From Haliotis rufescens (Eukaryota): DNA of 64,000 nucleotides. The DNA lies in NCBI RefSeq assembly GCF_023055435.1, contig NW_025963779.1, forward strand, positions 67,580,001-67,644,000, given 5' to 3'. Of the stretch, positions 21,401-30,400 are shown piece after piece (positions within the stretch are counted from its first letter, which is position 1; each line of letters opens with the position of its first letter). The position numbers and the translations under genes were made by a program. Below the pieces are notes generated by a model. That model ran no database searches. It had not been told where the DNA came from and was given only the letters and a program-made list of their open reading frames with translations.

Positions 21401-24400
21401 TGAGGACATCCCATCATGCCCATTGCAGGTTACGTCAAAATGATCTTTGCGAACTTTGACCAAGCAATGCAATGACTAACAGGAAGTCAACAATAGCCAA
21501 TGGGAAAGCAGCTTTCTCCAACTTCACGGCACTAGTATCAAAATGTCGACCTCCATACTAGATTACGCTTTGAACAATACTTTGACAAAGTTCTCAATTC
21601 AAAATTTGAAAACTGAACAAAAGAATATTCTGGAATGTCTAATAGATGTCTGGAAGATTGTATGTACTTCCCACAGGCTGTGAAAAAATCTCTTCTGCTT
21701 CAAATGTTCATCCCACAGAAGCAAGCGACAGATGACGTTGAACATATGGCATGAGTCATACAACCTGAGCTTTCATTCAGAATACCATGTGTTAACCTTT
21801 CCATGGTTACATGATTAGAAAACACATTCAAACCTTCGTGATTTTGTAAGCAACGTTCTTATTGGTCTGATTAAAGGTTGTTCTGACTTGACCTGTAATG
21901 GGATGTCCTCAGATCTTTGAGTAGCAGTGATGTGCACTAAGATCTGATTTTAATGAGATTAGATGATAATACACAAAAGTTCAGACCCGCATATAACAGT
22001 CCTTGGGAATGGATTCATTAGTTTATGGGTACTTTTGCATTTGCCTGCAATCTCAAACCATCTGATTAAACATCATCTGGTCAATAGTAAGTCTGTCATG
22101 AATCTCTTACTAATTCACAAGAATGACCTTCAAAAAGACACACAGAAAAAATGTCACAACATATTTGGATTTGTGGGGAAAAAGTTCAAGATTCTTGTAA
22201 TGACCGCTTGCACACTGGTGGCAGTGATGATACTGGGAGGGTGAATCAGCGTTAGAAATTGGCACTAGTCCTGTAGTCCTTGCCAAACTGCCCAATAGTT
22301 AAGGTATCACAAGGACTAGTAGAAATTTGCCATTTTTAAGGGTTTTGCAAGATGTTATCATTATAAGGACTAGTGGACTAAAACTGTAAGTTTCTATTGC
22401 TGGTGAATATGTAACAAAGTTGTCACATGCTGGGAGGCAGCTTGCATAACATTCAGTTATCTAGTGATTATCATATATAACCCTGCTCCTTAACTCACCC
22501 AGGATGAGAGCCATGAGGCTGAAGACAACTCCCCCCGAGAGGACATGGTCCTCCGTGATGACTTCCCTCAGCTTGTGCATGGTGGTGATCTGGGCCATGT
22601 AGGGGTGATTCCAGGTGGAGCTGAGGAACAGCGCCCCCAGGGAGATGGCAGCCACGCCGTATAGAGCCGTCTTCTGTGGCTGTAGATGGTTTATGGACAC
22701 TGCCTCGATGTAGAAGTCAATCAGGAAGACGAACATGATGACCAGCAGAAGAGGAAACAACAGGTAGAGCCATGACTGTATGTCACTCTGGAAGTAGCAT
22801 ACAAACACTGATATACAACAGTAGAGCCATGACTGTATGTCACTCTGGAAGTAGCATACAAACACTGATATACAACAGTAGAGCCATGACTGTATGTCAC
22901 TCTGGAAGGAGCATATAAACACTGATATACAACAGTAGAGCCATGACTGTATGTCACTCTGGAAGTAGCATACAAACACTGATATACAACAGTAGAGTCA
23001 TGACTGTATGTCACTCTGGAAGGAGCATACAAACACTGATATACCACAGGTACAGCCACGATTGTGTCACTCTGGAAGAAGCATACAAACAGTGATATAC
23101 CACAGTAGAGCCATGACTGTATGCCATTCTGGAAAAAGCATAAAAACACTGATATACAACAATAGAGCCATGACTGTATATCACTCTGGAAGTAGCATAA
23201 AAACACTGATATACAACAAAAGAGCCATGACTGTATGTCACTCTGGAAGTAGCATACAAACACTGATATACCACAGTAGAGCCATGACTGTATGTCACTC
23301 TGGAAGGAGCATACAAACACTTACATACAACAGTAGAGCCATGACTGTATGTCATTCTGGAAGGAGCATACAAACACTGGAATACAACAGTAGAGCCATG
23401 ACTGTATGTCACTCGGGAAGGAGCATACAAACACTGATATGCAACAGTAGAGCCATGACTGTATGTCACTCTGGAAGTAGCATACAAACACTGATCTACC
23501 AATGTAGGGCCATGACTGTATGTCACTCTGGAAGTAGCATACAAACACTGATATTCAACAGTAGAGTCATGACTGTATGTCACTCTGGAAGGAGCATACA
23601 AACACTGATATACCACAGGTACAGCCACGATTGTGTCACTCTGGAAGAAGCATACAAACAGTGATATACCACAGTAGAGCCATGACTGTATGCCATTCTG
23701 GAAAAAGCATAAAAACACTAATATACAACAATAGAGCCATGACTGTTTGTCACTCTGGAAGTAGCATACAAACACTGATATACAACAATAGAGCCATGAC
23801 TGTATGTCATTCTGGAAGGAGCATACAAACACTGATCTACCACAGTAGAGCCATGACTGTATATCACTCTGGAAGTAGCATACAAACACTGATATACAAC
23901 AATAGAGCCATGACTGTATGTCACTCTGGAAGGAGCATACAAACACTGATATACAACAGTAGAGCCATGACTGTATGTCACTCTGGACGTAGCATACAAA
24001 CACTGATATACAACGGTAGAGCCATGACTGCATGTCACTCTGGGAGGAGCATACAAACACTAATATACAACAGTAGAGCCATGACTGTATGTCACTCTGG
24101 AAGAAGCATATAAACTCTGATATACAGCAGTAGAGCCATGACTGTATGTCACTCTGGAAGTAGCATACAAACACTGATATACAACAGTAGAGCCATGACC
24201 GTATGTCACTCTGGAAGGAGCATACAAACACTTATATACAACGGTAGAGCCATGACTGTTTGTCATTCTGGAAGGAGCATACACACACTGATATACAACA
24301 GTAGAGCCATGACTGTATGTCACTCTGGAAGTAGCATACAAACACTGATATACAACAATAGAGCCATGACTGTATGTCATTCTGGAAGGAGCATACAAAC

Positions 24401-27400: not shown

Positions 27401-30400
27401 AAGGTCTATTCTACATGTTCTAACATAGATGCCCACATCTCAGGTTGGTGACCATCAAGATCTATTCTAACATGGATACCAACCTCTCTGTTCTGAGAGA
27501 ATCAAGATCTATTCTAACATGGATACCACCTCTCTGTTCTGAGAGAATCAAGATCTATTCTAACATGGATACCACCTCTCTGGTGGGAGACAATCAAGGT
27601 CTATTCTAACATGGATACCACCTCTCTGGTGGGAGAGAATCAAGATCTATTCTACATGTTCTAACATAGATGCCCACTTCTCAGGTTGGTGACCATCAAG
27701 ATATATTCTAACATGGATGCCTACTTCTCTGTTCAGAGACAATCAAGGTCTATTCTAACATGGATACCACCTCTCTGGTGGGAGAGAACCAAGATCTATT
27801 CTAACATCGATGCCCACCTCTCTGTTTGGAGACAATCAAGGTCTATTCTAACATGGATACCTATCTCTCTGGTGGGAGAGAATCAAGATCTATTCTACAT
27901 GTTCTAACATAGATGCCCACTTCTCAGGTTGGTGACCATCAAGATATATTCTAACATGGATGCCTACTTCTCTGGTGGGAGACAATCAAGGTCTATTCTA
28001 ACACGGATACCACCTTTCTGGTGGGAGAGAACCAAGATCTATTCTAACATGGATGCCCACCTCTCTGGTGGGAGAAAATCAAGATTTATTCTAACATGGA
28101 TACCACCTCTCTGTTCTGAGAGAATCAAGATCTATTCTAACATGGATACCACCTCTCTGGTGGGAGAGAATCAAGGTCTATTCTAACATGGATACCACCT
28201 CTCTGGTGGGAGAGAACCAAGATCTATTCTAACATGGATGCCCACCTCTCTGGTGGGAGAAAATCAAGATCTATTCTAACATGGATACCACCTCTCTGTT
28301 CTGAGAGAATCAAGATCTATTCTTACATGGATACCACCTCTCTGGTGGGAGAGAACCAAGATCTATTCTAACATCGATGCCCACCTCTCTGTTTGGAGAC
28401 AATCAAGGTCTATTCTAACATGGATACCTATCTCTCTGGTGGGAGAGAATCAAGATCTATTCTACATGTTCTAACATAGATGCCCACTTCTCAGGTTGGT
28501 GACCATCAAGATATATTCTAACATGGATGCCTACTTCTCTGTTTGGAGACAATCAAGGTCTATTCTAACATGGATACCAACCTCTCTGTTCAGAGACAAT
28601 CAAGGTCTATTCTAACACGGATACCACCTTTCTGGTGGGAGAGAACCAAGATCTATTCTAACATGGATACCCACCTCTCTGGTGGGAGAGAACCAAGATC
28701 TATTCTAACATGGATACCCACCTCTCTGTTTGGAGACAATCAAGGTCTATTCTAACATGGATGCCCACCTCTCTGGTGGAAGAGAACCAAGATCTATTCT
28801 AACATGGATACCCACCTCTCTGGTGGGAGAGAACCAAGGTCTATTCTAACATGGATACCCACCTCTCTGGTGGGAGAGAACCAAGATCTATTCTAACATG
28901 GATACCCACCTCTCTGGTGGGAGAGAATCAAGGTCTATTCTAACATGGATACCCACCTCTCTGGTGGGAGACAACCAAGATCTATTCTAACATGGATACC
29001 CAACTCTCTGTTTGGAGACAATCAAGATCTATTCTAACATGGATACCACCTCTCTGGTGGGAGAAAATCAAGGTCTATTCTAACATGAATACCACCTCTC
29101 TGGTGGGAGAGAATCAAGATCTATTCTAACACGGATACCAACCTCTCTGTTCGGAAAGAATCAAGATCTATTCTAACATGGATGCCCAACTCTCTGTTTG
29201 GAGACAATCAAGATCGATTCTAACATGGATACCACCTCTCTGGTGGGAGAAAATCAAGGTCTATTCTAACATGAATACCACCTCTCTGGTGGGAGAGAAT
29301 CAAGATCTATTCTAACACGGATACCAACCTCTCTGTTCGGAAAGAATCAAGATCTATTCTAACATGGATGCCCAACTCTCTGTTTGGAGACAATCAAGAT
29401 CTATTCTAACATGGATACCACCTCTCTGGTGGGAGAGAACCAAGATCTATTCTGACAAGGATACCTATCTCTCTTGTGGGAGAGAATCAAGGTCTATTCT
29501 AACATGGATACCCACCTCTCTGGCGGGAGAGAATCAAGATCTATTCTGACAAGGATACCTATCTCTCTGTTTGGAAAGAATCAAGATCTATTCTAACATG
29601 GATGCCCAACTCTCTGTTTGGAGACAATCAAGATCTATTCTAACATGGATACCACCTCTCTGGTGGGAGAAAATCAAGGTCTATTCTAACATGAATACCA
29701 CCTCTCTGGTGGGAGAGAATCAAGATCTATTCTAACATGGATACCACCTCTCTGGTGGGAGAGAACCAAGATCTATTCTAACATGGATACCACCTCTCTG
29801 GTGGGAGAGAATAAAGACTTATTCTGACAAGGATACCTATCTCTCTGGTGGGAGAGAATCAAGATCTATTCTAACATGGATACCCACCTCTCTGGTGGGA
29901 GAGAATCAAGGTCTATTCTAACACGGATACCCACCTCTCTGGTGAGAGAGAATCAAGGTCTATTCTAACATGGATACCCACCTCTCTGGTGGGAGAGAAT
30001 CAAGGTCTATTCTAACACGGATACCCATCTCTCTGGTGGGAGAGAACCAAGATCTATTCTAACATGGATACCCACCTCTCTGGTGGGAGAGAATCAAGAT
30101 CTATTCTAACATGGATACCCACCTCTCAGCTGGGAGACAATCAAGGTCTATTCTAACATGGATACCCACCTCTAAGGTCGGAGAGAATCAAGATCTATTC
30201 TAACATGGATACCCACCTCTCGTGTGAGGTATATGAAGGCTGCCCAGGGCCACAGTAGACCAGCTGATACAAATGTTGACAGAGCATGAAGACGTTTTGC
30301 CCCGCCCACTTCCACTGACAGTTTTTTAGCAGCTGCATTGTAGCCCACATGAAGACACAAGGTGATGAACAACAGCACCACACCACCCTGTAACAAACCA

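Follow-up and report, generated by a model that had tools for sequence, protein, structure and literature searches.

The window analysed here comprises 64,000 nucleotides of Haliotis rufescens (contig NW_025963779.1, positions 67,580,001 to 67,644,000) and carries on its minus strand an orthologue of ZnT5/SLC30A5. Searches were run exon by exon rather than on a joined spliced model, and the assembly searched comprises 1.334 Gb in 615 pieces and represents one haplotype. With the vertebrate protein P0028, which we take to be ZnT5 on the basis of the human sequence and its architecture, tblastn returned exon matches in the window across most of residues 25–769, with residues ~176–199 and 519–584 unmatched. 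The Cation_efflux (CDF) profile PF01545 matches two downstream exons, a His-rich loop lies in an open reading frame at 18770–18426, and upstream of the domain the protein has a long N-terminal extension with multiple membrane passes, which tblastn and the profile match show to be colinear with that of vertebrate ZnT5. The original prediction had named the gene as ZnT5, an assignment borne out by this colinearity, by the Cation_efflux domain and by ZnT7 being the closest solved relative of P0028. The tblastn search with P0028 missed at least two upstream exons; the labels 'exon 8', 'exon 9' and 'intron 8' are nominal. The gene is single-copy in the 1.33-Gb assembly, which thus holds no paralogue with an unexpanded intron.

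The upstream exon, 'exon 8' (30217..30387, minus strand), is translated as GGVVLLF...AAFIYLTRE, ends in phase 0 and shares 50% identity with residues 200–257 of P0028 (tblastn). The downstream exon, 'exon 9' (22499..22787, minus strand), ends in ...LMALIL(G) before a donor G|GTGAGT at 22498 and occurs once in the genome. The GT...AG intron between them spans 22788–30216 on the minus strand, or 7429 nt. Across the 30217|22787 join, the predicted protein follows vertebrate ZnT5 colinearly and without a gap (TRE|SDIQSW versus TTE|SKVESW, tblastn), and both the start of 'exon 9', S-[DE]-[IV]-[QE]-S-W, and the intron position are conserved from molluscs to vertebrates. No protein or transcript of the same genus that crosses the junction was found in the protein databases; 'exon 9' reaches 71% identity with its best match, and the highest-ranking matches are fragmentary short ORFs that seem to have been called on genomic contigs. 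A dispersed SINE-like element is present in three ZnT5 introns of the window. The copy adjoining 'exon 8' holds no tRNA gene, and no known RNA family was detected in the intron at Rfam gathering scores.

Two tandem arrays make up ~99.5% of this intron. TRF places them where they were originally predicted: a 47-bp minisatellite of ~65 units on the donor side (27169..30221, minus strand; 47 bp x 64.7, 85% matches, score 4123) and a 57-bp minisatellite of ~76 units on the acceptor side (22757..27129, minus strand; 57 bp x 76.5, 91% matches, score 7165). Local alignment of the 57-bp and 47-bp units to each other is no better than that of shuffled sequences. The description of the intron as essentially two unrelated arrays, each ending at a splice site, therefore holds.

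Each 47-bp unit consists of a donor (GTGGGT/GTGGTA), then ~30 nt, then a pyrimidine run with AGAGAG. The array contains 51 AGGT junctions, and its units have a mean pairwise identity of 84%. The real donor, GAG|GTGGGT (30211..30219, minus strand), is its first copy and the one whose join to 22787 is colinear with vertebrate ZnT5. The donor unit was expected to span the exon-intron junction, and the array does start inside the exon, but the overlap is limited to 5 nt (GAGAG); similarity to more of 'exon 8' does not exceed the level expected by chance (P=0.24 without gaps, 0.42 with gaps). Among the ~64 spare donor units, 46 retain [G/A]AG|GT together with a hexamer of the unit type, and 13 match the real donor exactly from -3 to +6. 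An in-frame TAG is found at the 15th codon past the end of 'exon 8' (30172..30174, minus strand), so that read-through or use of a spare donor would lead to a premature stop.

The 57-bp unit does span its junction, as was foreseen. It combines 30 nt copied from the start of 'exon 9' with the 27 nt of the intron 3' end, including TTCCAG. The first 31 nt of the exon form the partial last unit of the array and equal the unit's first 30 nt save for one 1-nt indel, and this 1-nt deletion relative to the exon is common to all intronic units. An identity matrix of the units gives a mean pairwise identity of 91.5% and reveals 12-unit internal duplications. The real acceptor context, TGTTTGTATGCTACTTCCAG|AGT (22785..22807, minus strand), is the last copy of the array. 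At the acceptor position, 66 units retain a unit-type pentamer ending in AG (TCCAG, CCCAG or TCTAG); 18 spare acceptors are identical to the real site over the 23 nt from -20 to +3, and 53 differ by two letters or fewer. An open in-frame stretch upstream of the real acceptor (22844..23000, minus strand) contains the three nearest spare acceptors, with first bases at 22844, 22901 and 22958, which would add 19, 38 and 57 amino acids in frame. It is capped by a stop at 22998–23000, and the spare acceptors beyond these three are predicted to give a frameshift or a stop.

Between the arrays lies a 39-nt spacer (27130..27168, minus strand). A stretch of ~40 bp had been described as unique sequence; the spacer exists, but most of it is a 47-bp unit that has decayed while keeping its phase. 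Its first 30 nt, which include TTACAG|GTTAGT, continue the 47-bp period with 17 of 30 matches, the best of the 47 phases (shuffle P=0.00025), while the final 24 nt bear a weak resemblance to the intron-derived portion of the 57-bp unit (gapped alignment, P=0.03). Both arrays finish in partial units on the side facing the spacer, and their history must therefore comprise more than two simple duplications. Based on the junction-duplication geometry, the unit table and the spacer alignments, a 65-nt segment (27130..27194, minus strand), flanked by the exon-8-like GAGAG and the exon-9-like GTGACATACAG, is a candidate remnant of a short ancestral intron. The ancestor had been put at ~120 bp; a short ancestor is plausible, but judged from the abalone intron itself it was perhaps shorter, as suggested by the 65 nt of this putative fossil.

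As to the origin of the repeats, a pattern search of the 1.33 Gb, allowing up to 3 mismatches in 28 nt, retrieved 73 matches for the 57-bp unit and 60 for the 47-bp unit. All are located inside this intron and none elsewhere, whereas a reversed control pattern gave 0 matches. A BLAST-type search with both units likewise returned this locus only. These results support an origin of both arrays by local amplification of the gene's own sequence, as originally predicted, and not from a dispersed repeat. Because the exon start and the intron position are conserved to vertebrates, the exon sequence is ancestral and the repeat was derived from it.

The reading we favour, with a probability of roughly 0.78, is that of a two-sided 'mirage' minisatellite intron: a short intron underwent two independent local duplications, the arrays are most likely neutral passengers, and the outermost sites are spliced. 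On the donor side, the last 5 nt of the upstream exon together with ~42 nt of the intron start would have been duplicated in tandem, giving rise to ~65 copies of 47 bp. On the acceptor side, an independent tandem duplication would have taken the last 27 nt of the ancestral intron and the first 30 nt of the downstream exon, leading to ~76 copies of 57 bp. A single intronic founder copy, one base shorter than the exon sequence, was probably the ancestor of all 57-bp units. The arrays probably grew by slippage or unequal exchange, including the block duplications of 12 units. Given its lower unit identity (84% versus 91.5%), the 47-bp array is predicted to be the older of the two.

In classical experiments with duplicated splice sites, the inner, proximal pair is often favoured, and for this reason the use of the outermost sites is not self-evident. 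Since ZnT5 'exon 9' is single-copy in the genome, the gene must be spliced correctly. We infer that the spliceosome takes the outermost pair, i.e. the donor that adjoins 'exon 8' and the final acceptor of the other array. The latter borders the unique body of 'exon 9', whose own donor lies 289 nt downstream. The outermost sites are also chosen in the known cases, where this is explained by 5'-to-3' oriented donor selection and exon definition. A transcript spliced at a spare donor would carry a premature stop; one spliced at a spare acceptor would be frameshifted or run into a stop, unless the acceptor is among the nearest three (+19, 38 or 57 residues). Predictions of local RNA structure give the real donor no advantage, as it appears the least accessible of 46 sites (P unpaired 0.05 versus a decoy mean of 0.38). 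This prediction contradicts a CCCACC/GGUGGG hairpin that would mask the spare donors while leaving the real one open.

A first alternative is that the arrays are functional, with copy number tuning ZnT5 output through unproductive splicing (premature stop and NMD) or with the in-frame acceptors producing a ladder of isoforms in steps of 19 residues. Many spare sites are indeed letter-identical to the real ones, splicing from a spare donor leads to a TAG after 14 codons, and an open reading frame is kept at three spare acceptors. The human genes IFI6 and CBS use their first two pseudo-donors constitutively (PMC1557585), and abalone intronic minisatellites can differ in length among individuals, as described for another gene and species (PMC6905558). 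However, the known cases are mostly silent. A unit length that is a multiple of 3, such as 57 bp, has a prior of one in three, and the open frame ends after 3.7 units. Moreover, the inserted peptide would land in a membrane-spanning region of a conserved transporter. We regard functional arrays as unlikely, and the VNTR-tuned expression or NMD switch suggested by the original prediction finds no support here. A wider proposal, according to which the spliceosome would not merely ignore the arrays, is quite improbable: the 47-bp units and the central TTACAG|GTTAGT would act as recursive or dual-specific sites for a stepwise removal of the 7.4-kb intron, or array length would determine how much ZnT5 pre-mRNA is lost to unproductive splicing, as a heritable rheostat of expression.

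Stepwise removal of the intron is also very doubtful. Here, the 47-bp units would be dual-specific or recursive sites, with multi-unit steps regenerating the same donor, or nested inner pairs would be removed first. In line with this, 47 of the ~65 unit junctions of the 47-bp array read AG|GT[AG] behind a stretch of 70% pyrimidines, TTACAG|GTTAGT is found in the decayed spacer copy, and the polyubiquitin gene UBC provides a documented example of AGGT arrays that act as either kind of site (PMC10809524). The case for ZnT5 is one of sequence motifs, however, and the first AG past the pyrimidine run is a CAG located 4 nt before the GT, the use of which would add AGAG and shift the frame. In addition, 47 nt, the length of one unit, is probably below what can be spliced.

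It is highly improbable that an assembly artefact inflated or mis-joined the arrays, or that the intron is in truth short. Assembly errors are notoriously frequent in tandem arrays, and an amphioxus mirage was mis-assembled in a draft genome (PMC3087553). On the other hand, the units of the two arrays have diverged into many distinct variants (mean identity 84% and 91.5%), the arrays contain no Ns, and the published red abalone assembly was built from PacBio HiFi reads (616 scaffolds, 1.3 Gb; PMC9709998). As the longest exact internal repeat in the two arrays is only 192 and 217 bp, accurate long reads can be placed uniquely. Finally, the idea that the units stem from a dispersed satellite, or from a transposon fragment inserted into the intron, with the exon start recruited by exonisation, can be dismissed, at least within this one assembly: nothing was found in its favour, even though the window does carry a dispersed element, and it is refuted by the zero copies of either unit outside the intron and by the conserved SDIQSW/SKVESW start and intron position.

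How the spliceosome chooses among identical competing sites is still debated, with scanning, proximity and exon definition all being considered. In the intron of ZnT5, a gene that is essential and single-copy, 13 spare donors and 18 spare acceptors match the real sites letter for letter, and the competing models predict different junction reads. The intron is of moderate interest as a natural experiment on splice-site choice. The original prediction called it a natural test of exon definition, which describes the situation fairly; the concept is not new, however, in view of the human VNTRs (PMC1557585) and the amphioxus mirages (PMC3087553, PMC3902484). Taken as one locus, ZnT5 only adds a mollusc, and a two-sided form that fills a whole intron, to a known class of repeats.

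Several known systems share features with this intron. According to the model of Rogers (PMC3265369, PMC4974935), introns are gained by tandem duplication over an AGGT proto-splice site; in that model, as in ZnT5, a local duplication copies splice signals, but the model creates a new intron, whereas in ZnT5 an old conserved intron was enlarged. In the UBC array, as in the 47-bp array, the AG|GT at unit boundaries could serve as a 3' or a 5' splice site (PMC10809524). The UBC units are coding and their splicing alters the number of monomers, while those of ZnT5 are intronic and their dual role is putative.

Further parallels are the human donor-spanning VNTRs, namely F7 IVS7 (37 bp x 5-9), IFI6 6-16 intron 2 (25 pseudo-sites), CBS IVS13, LMNB2 and PDGF (PMC1557585). 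The outermost site is used in F7, LMNB2 and PDGF, and in IFI6 and CBS splicing takes place at the first two pseudo-sites as well (PMC1557585). The first monomer overlaps the exon by a few bases in both F7 (4 bp) and ZnT5 (5 bp), and the donor hexamer of F7, gugggu, is the same as that of ZnT5, the real donor being followed by identical pseudo-donors in both. The human VNTRs affect the donor only, with at most ~25 copies, whereas the ZnT5 intron is two-sided. Use of the most upstream donor was demonstrated by experiment in the human cases and is inferred for ZnT5. In F7, mutation of the real site lets the next copy take over.

The ZnT5 intron is an extreme two-sided case of the known 'mirage' minisatellite type, and not a new kind of element. 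Mirage minisatellites are described in amphioxus Adh3, the globins BflGb6 and BflGb9, troponin C and PGBD5 (Cañestro et al. 2002, as cited in PMC3087553; PMC3902484). There, they are found at both 5' and 3' boundaries, and normal splicing is reported to be undisturbed (PMC3087553, PMC3902484). As in ZnT5, the unit spans an exon-intron boundary, at the donor or the acceptor, many copies keep their AG/GT signals, and the copies at the edge escape homogenisation. In the literature searched, no published mollusc case of a splice-junction-spanning minisatellite was found. The ZnT5 intron thus differs from the amphioxus mirages in its host, a mollusc, and in that both ends of one intron are affected, with the repeats filling ~99.5% of it. 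The amphioxus arrays are also short, with 3–6 units of 150–160 bp in BflGb6, versus ~65 and ~76 units in ZnT5.

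Using tblastn, P0028, a 775-residue vertebrate protein, was aligned exon by exon along the ZnT5/SLC30A5 gene from 38358 to 15467, the homology searches being run per exon. The upstream exon (30387–30217, minus strand; here called exon 8) encodes GGVVLLF...AAFIYLTRE, ends in phase 0 and is followed by GTGGGT; the downstream exon (22787–22499, minus strand; here called exon 9) is preceded by TTCCAG and ends in G|GTGAGT. Since residues 200–257 of P0028 stop exactly at 30217 and residues 257–353 begin at 22790/22787, the join TRE|SDIQSW is gap-free compared to the vertebrate TTE|SKVESW. 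The downstream exons contain a Cation_efflux domain (PF01545) as well as a His-rich loop, and the closest solved relative of P0028 is ZnT7. A CDF domain after a multi-pass N-terminal extension of ~400 residues is the architecture of ZnT5. The best protein-database identity to exon 9 is 71%, and this exon is found only once in the 1.33-Gb assembly, making this the only ZnT5 gene here. Another exon of the gene (21050–20853) likewise has a GTGGGT donor (CTG|GTGGGT), so this slightly unusual hexamer is normal for ZnT5 in this genome. Short ORF fragments in other animals (...Q|SEVQSW, ...Q|TEIESW and ...Q|SKVESW) look like calls on genomic contigs, entering from the intron, in which case the exon start would be old, as would the position of the intron.

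Between these two exons, Tandem Repeats Finder revealed an acceptor array with a 57-bp unit (76.5 copies, 22757–27129, 91% matches, no indels) and a donor array with a 47-bp unit (64.7 copies, 27169–30221, 85% matches). All units of both arrays were tabulated in gene orientation. The two consensus units are unrelated in either orientation, in agreement with the original description of an intron made of two unrelated arrays. The 57-bp unit consists of AGTGACATACAGTCATGGCTCTAC-TGTTGT, corresponding to the exon's initial 31 nt with a single C missing, and ATATCAGTGTTTGTATGCTACTTCCAG, the 27-nt 3' end of the intron. A version retaining this C is present only once, in the exon itself, and the C-deleted form is present in the intronic units as 45 exact copies and 7 copies with a substitution. 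Therefore, the acceptor array expanded from one intronic founder rather than by the exon being copied over and over. The 47-bp unit starts with GTGGGTATCC, ends with ...TCTCTCCCACCAGAGAG and has only GAGAG in common with the exon end, with the 15 exon bases beyond it matching no better than shuffles (P=0.24). The idea of a donor unit spanning the junction is thus borne out for these 5 nt, but not supported further into the exon. This short overlap may be the microhomology where the first slippage happened.

Mean pairwise unit identity is 91.5% in the 57-bp array versus 84.4% in the 47-bp array. It shows no fall-off with distance but peaks for units that lie 12 apart, and many units are identical to others at spacings of 12, 21 or 33 units. 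This pattern suggests that block duplications and unequal exchange took place. Exact repeats within the arrays reach at most 192 bp (offset 684) and 217 bp (offset 567), and the window contains no Ns. Arrays this diverged can be resolved with accurate long reads, and it is unlikely that they are an assembly artefact. A whole-assembly search with a 401-bp piece from each array matched this locus only. Scanning the same 1.33 Gb with 28-nt unit cores (≤3 mismatches) gave 73 matches for the 57-bp and 60 for the 47-bp unit, all within this intron, and none for a reversed control pattern. A dispersed satellite as the source of the units was rejected, as neither unit has a match elsewhere in this assembly, and the predicted local origin is upheld.

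Between both arrays, a 39-nt spacer (27168–27130) comes after a partial 47-bp unit. Instead of the ~40 bp of unique sequence originally described, it is mostly a donor-unit copy that has decayed at the array edge: its first 30 nt match the in-register periodic 47-bp consensus at 17 positions (shuffle P=0.00025), this phase being the best of 47 possible phases and exactly the one expected. The decayed copy includes the junction TTACAG|GTTAGT. The last 24 nt show a weak gapped alignment to the acceptor unit, within its intronic portion (P=0.03). As the ancestral intron ends up between the innermost donor and acceptor copies when duplications span a junction, the 65 nt at 27194–27130, bordered by GAGAG and GTGACATACAG, may be the fossil of this intron, which the intronic parts of both units (about 42 and 27 nt) would tile almost exactly. 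With so short an ancestral intron and units of ~50 nt, roughly two-thirds of the tolerated duplications would be junction-spanning, so that ‘anchoring’ at both splice sites would require no special mechanism. Just before the start of the 57-bp array, a small palindrome is present (GTCAC-TTGG-GTGAC, 27130–27143), and the reverse-complemented spacer end (CCAAGTGAC) is similar to the acceptor junction CCAGAGTGAC. These features of the array edge may have been left behind by fold-back or by templated repair.

Thirteen spare donors are identical to the real one from −3 to +6 (GAG|GTGGGT) and a further 23 read GAG|GTGGTA, while 18 spare acceptors are identical to the real one from −20 to +3 and 53 are within two letters. 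Reading through past exon 8, the 15th codon is TAG (30174–30172), so any spare donor would lead to a premature stop. Only the nearest three spare acceptors (first bases 22844, 22901 and 22958) are open and in frame and would insert 19, 38 and 57 residues, respectively; the others are closed by a stop at 23000–22998 and by frame drift.

We infer that splicing joins the first donor to the last acceptor, since this is the sole ZnT5 gene and no other join restores the conserved protein. Precedents also argue for this choice. In human F7, the most upstream of the identical donors is used exclusively, and when it is mutated the following copy is activated; the same holds for LMNB2 and PDGF, and IFI6 and CBS additionally use the first two pseudo-sites (PMC1557585). 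In amphioxus, ‘mirage’ minisatellites, whose unit spans an exon-intron boundary, reportedly leave splicing undisturbed at both 5' and 3' boundaries (PMC3087553, PMC3902484). The acceptor would probably be chosen by exon definition, as the unique exon body and the real donor 289 nt downstream adjoin the last copy only, and AGGT is absent from the 57-bp array. It is conceivable, as a minor possibility, that the 47-bp units act as dual-specific or recursive sites and that the intron is removed stepwise: 47 unit junctions have a pyrimidine-rich tract followed by AG|GT[AG], resembling such sites as those of UBC (PMC10809524). However, the first AG belongs to a CAG located 4 nt before the GT, and splicing there would shift the frame. 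A CCCACC/GGUGGG hairpin masking the spare donors was rejected, the real donor being predicted less accessible than all 45 decoys.

Tandem repeats are common throughout the window, so intronic arrays have a raised base rate here. Minisatellites are found at 47816–48412 (100 bp x 6, 97%), 40828–41054 (45/90 bp x 5), 2007–2303 (27 bp x 11) and 37722–38033 (9 bp x 35), and a very homogeneous array (70 bp x 35, 98% matches) lies at 54672–57125 between two glycoside-hydrolase-like genes. In another ZnT5 intron, a 17/33-bp minisatellite (33375–33970 and 34141–34397), pyrimidine-rich on the gene strand, stops short of the acceptor of the exon at 33351 by about 24–45 nt, on its upstream side, and does not copy the junction. 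A SINE-like dispersed element with a (GTGA)n-type head occurs in three ZnT5 introns (17360–17382, 30517–30539 and 34049–34071), its identical 23-mer being found three times versus 0 expected. One copy, around 30420–30600, lies directly upstream of exon 8; ARAGORN detected no tRNA gene in it. At 1–3600, minus-strand ORF fragments belong to a neighbouring gene, which we take to resemble an acyl-CoA synthetase or fatty-acid transport protein.

This class of repeats is already known from the amphioxus mirages and from human donor-spanning VNTRs. A literature search returned no report of mirage-type minisatellites from molluscs; a length-polymorphic 27-bp intronic minisatellite has been described in abalone (PMC6905558). 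Particular to the ZnT5 intron are the scale and symmetry, with about 65 and 76 copies over ~99.5% of 7.4 kb, and the host of these paired arrays, a single-copy housekeeping gene. The repeat in IVS7 of human F7 includes 4 bp of exon (PMC1557585), and the abalone donor unit, with its GAGAG, is similarly minimal.
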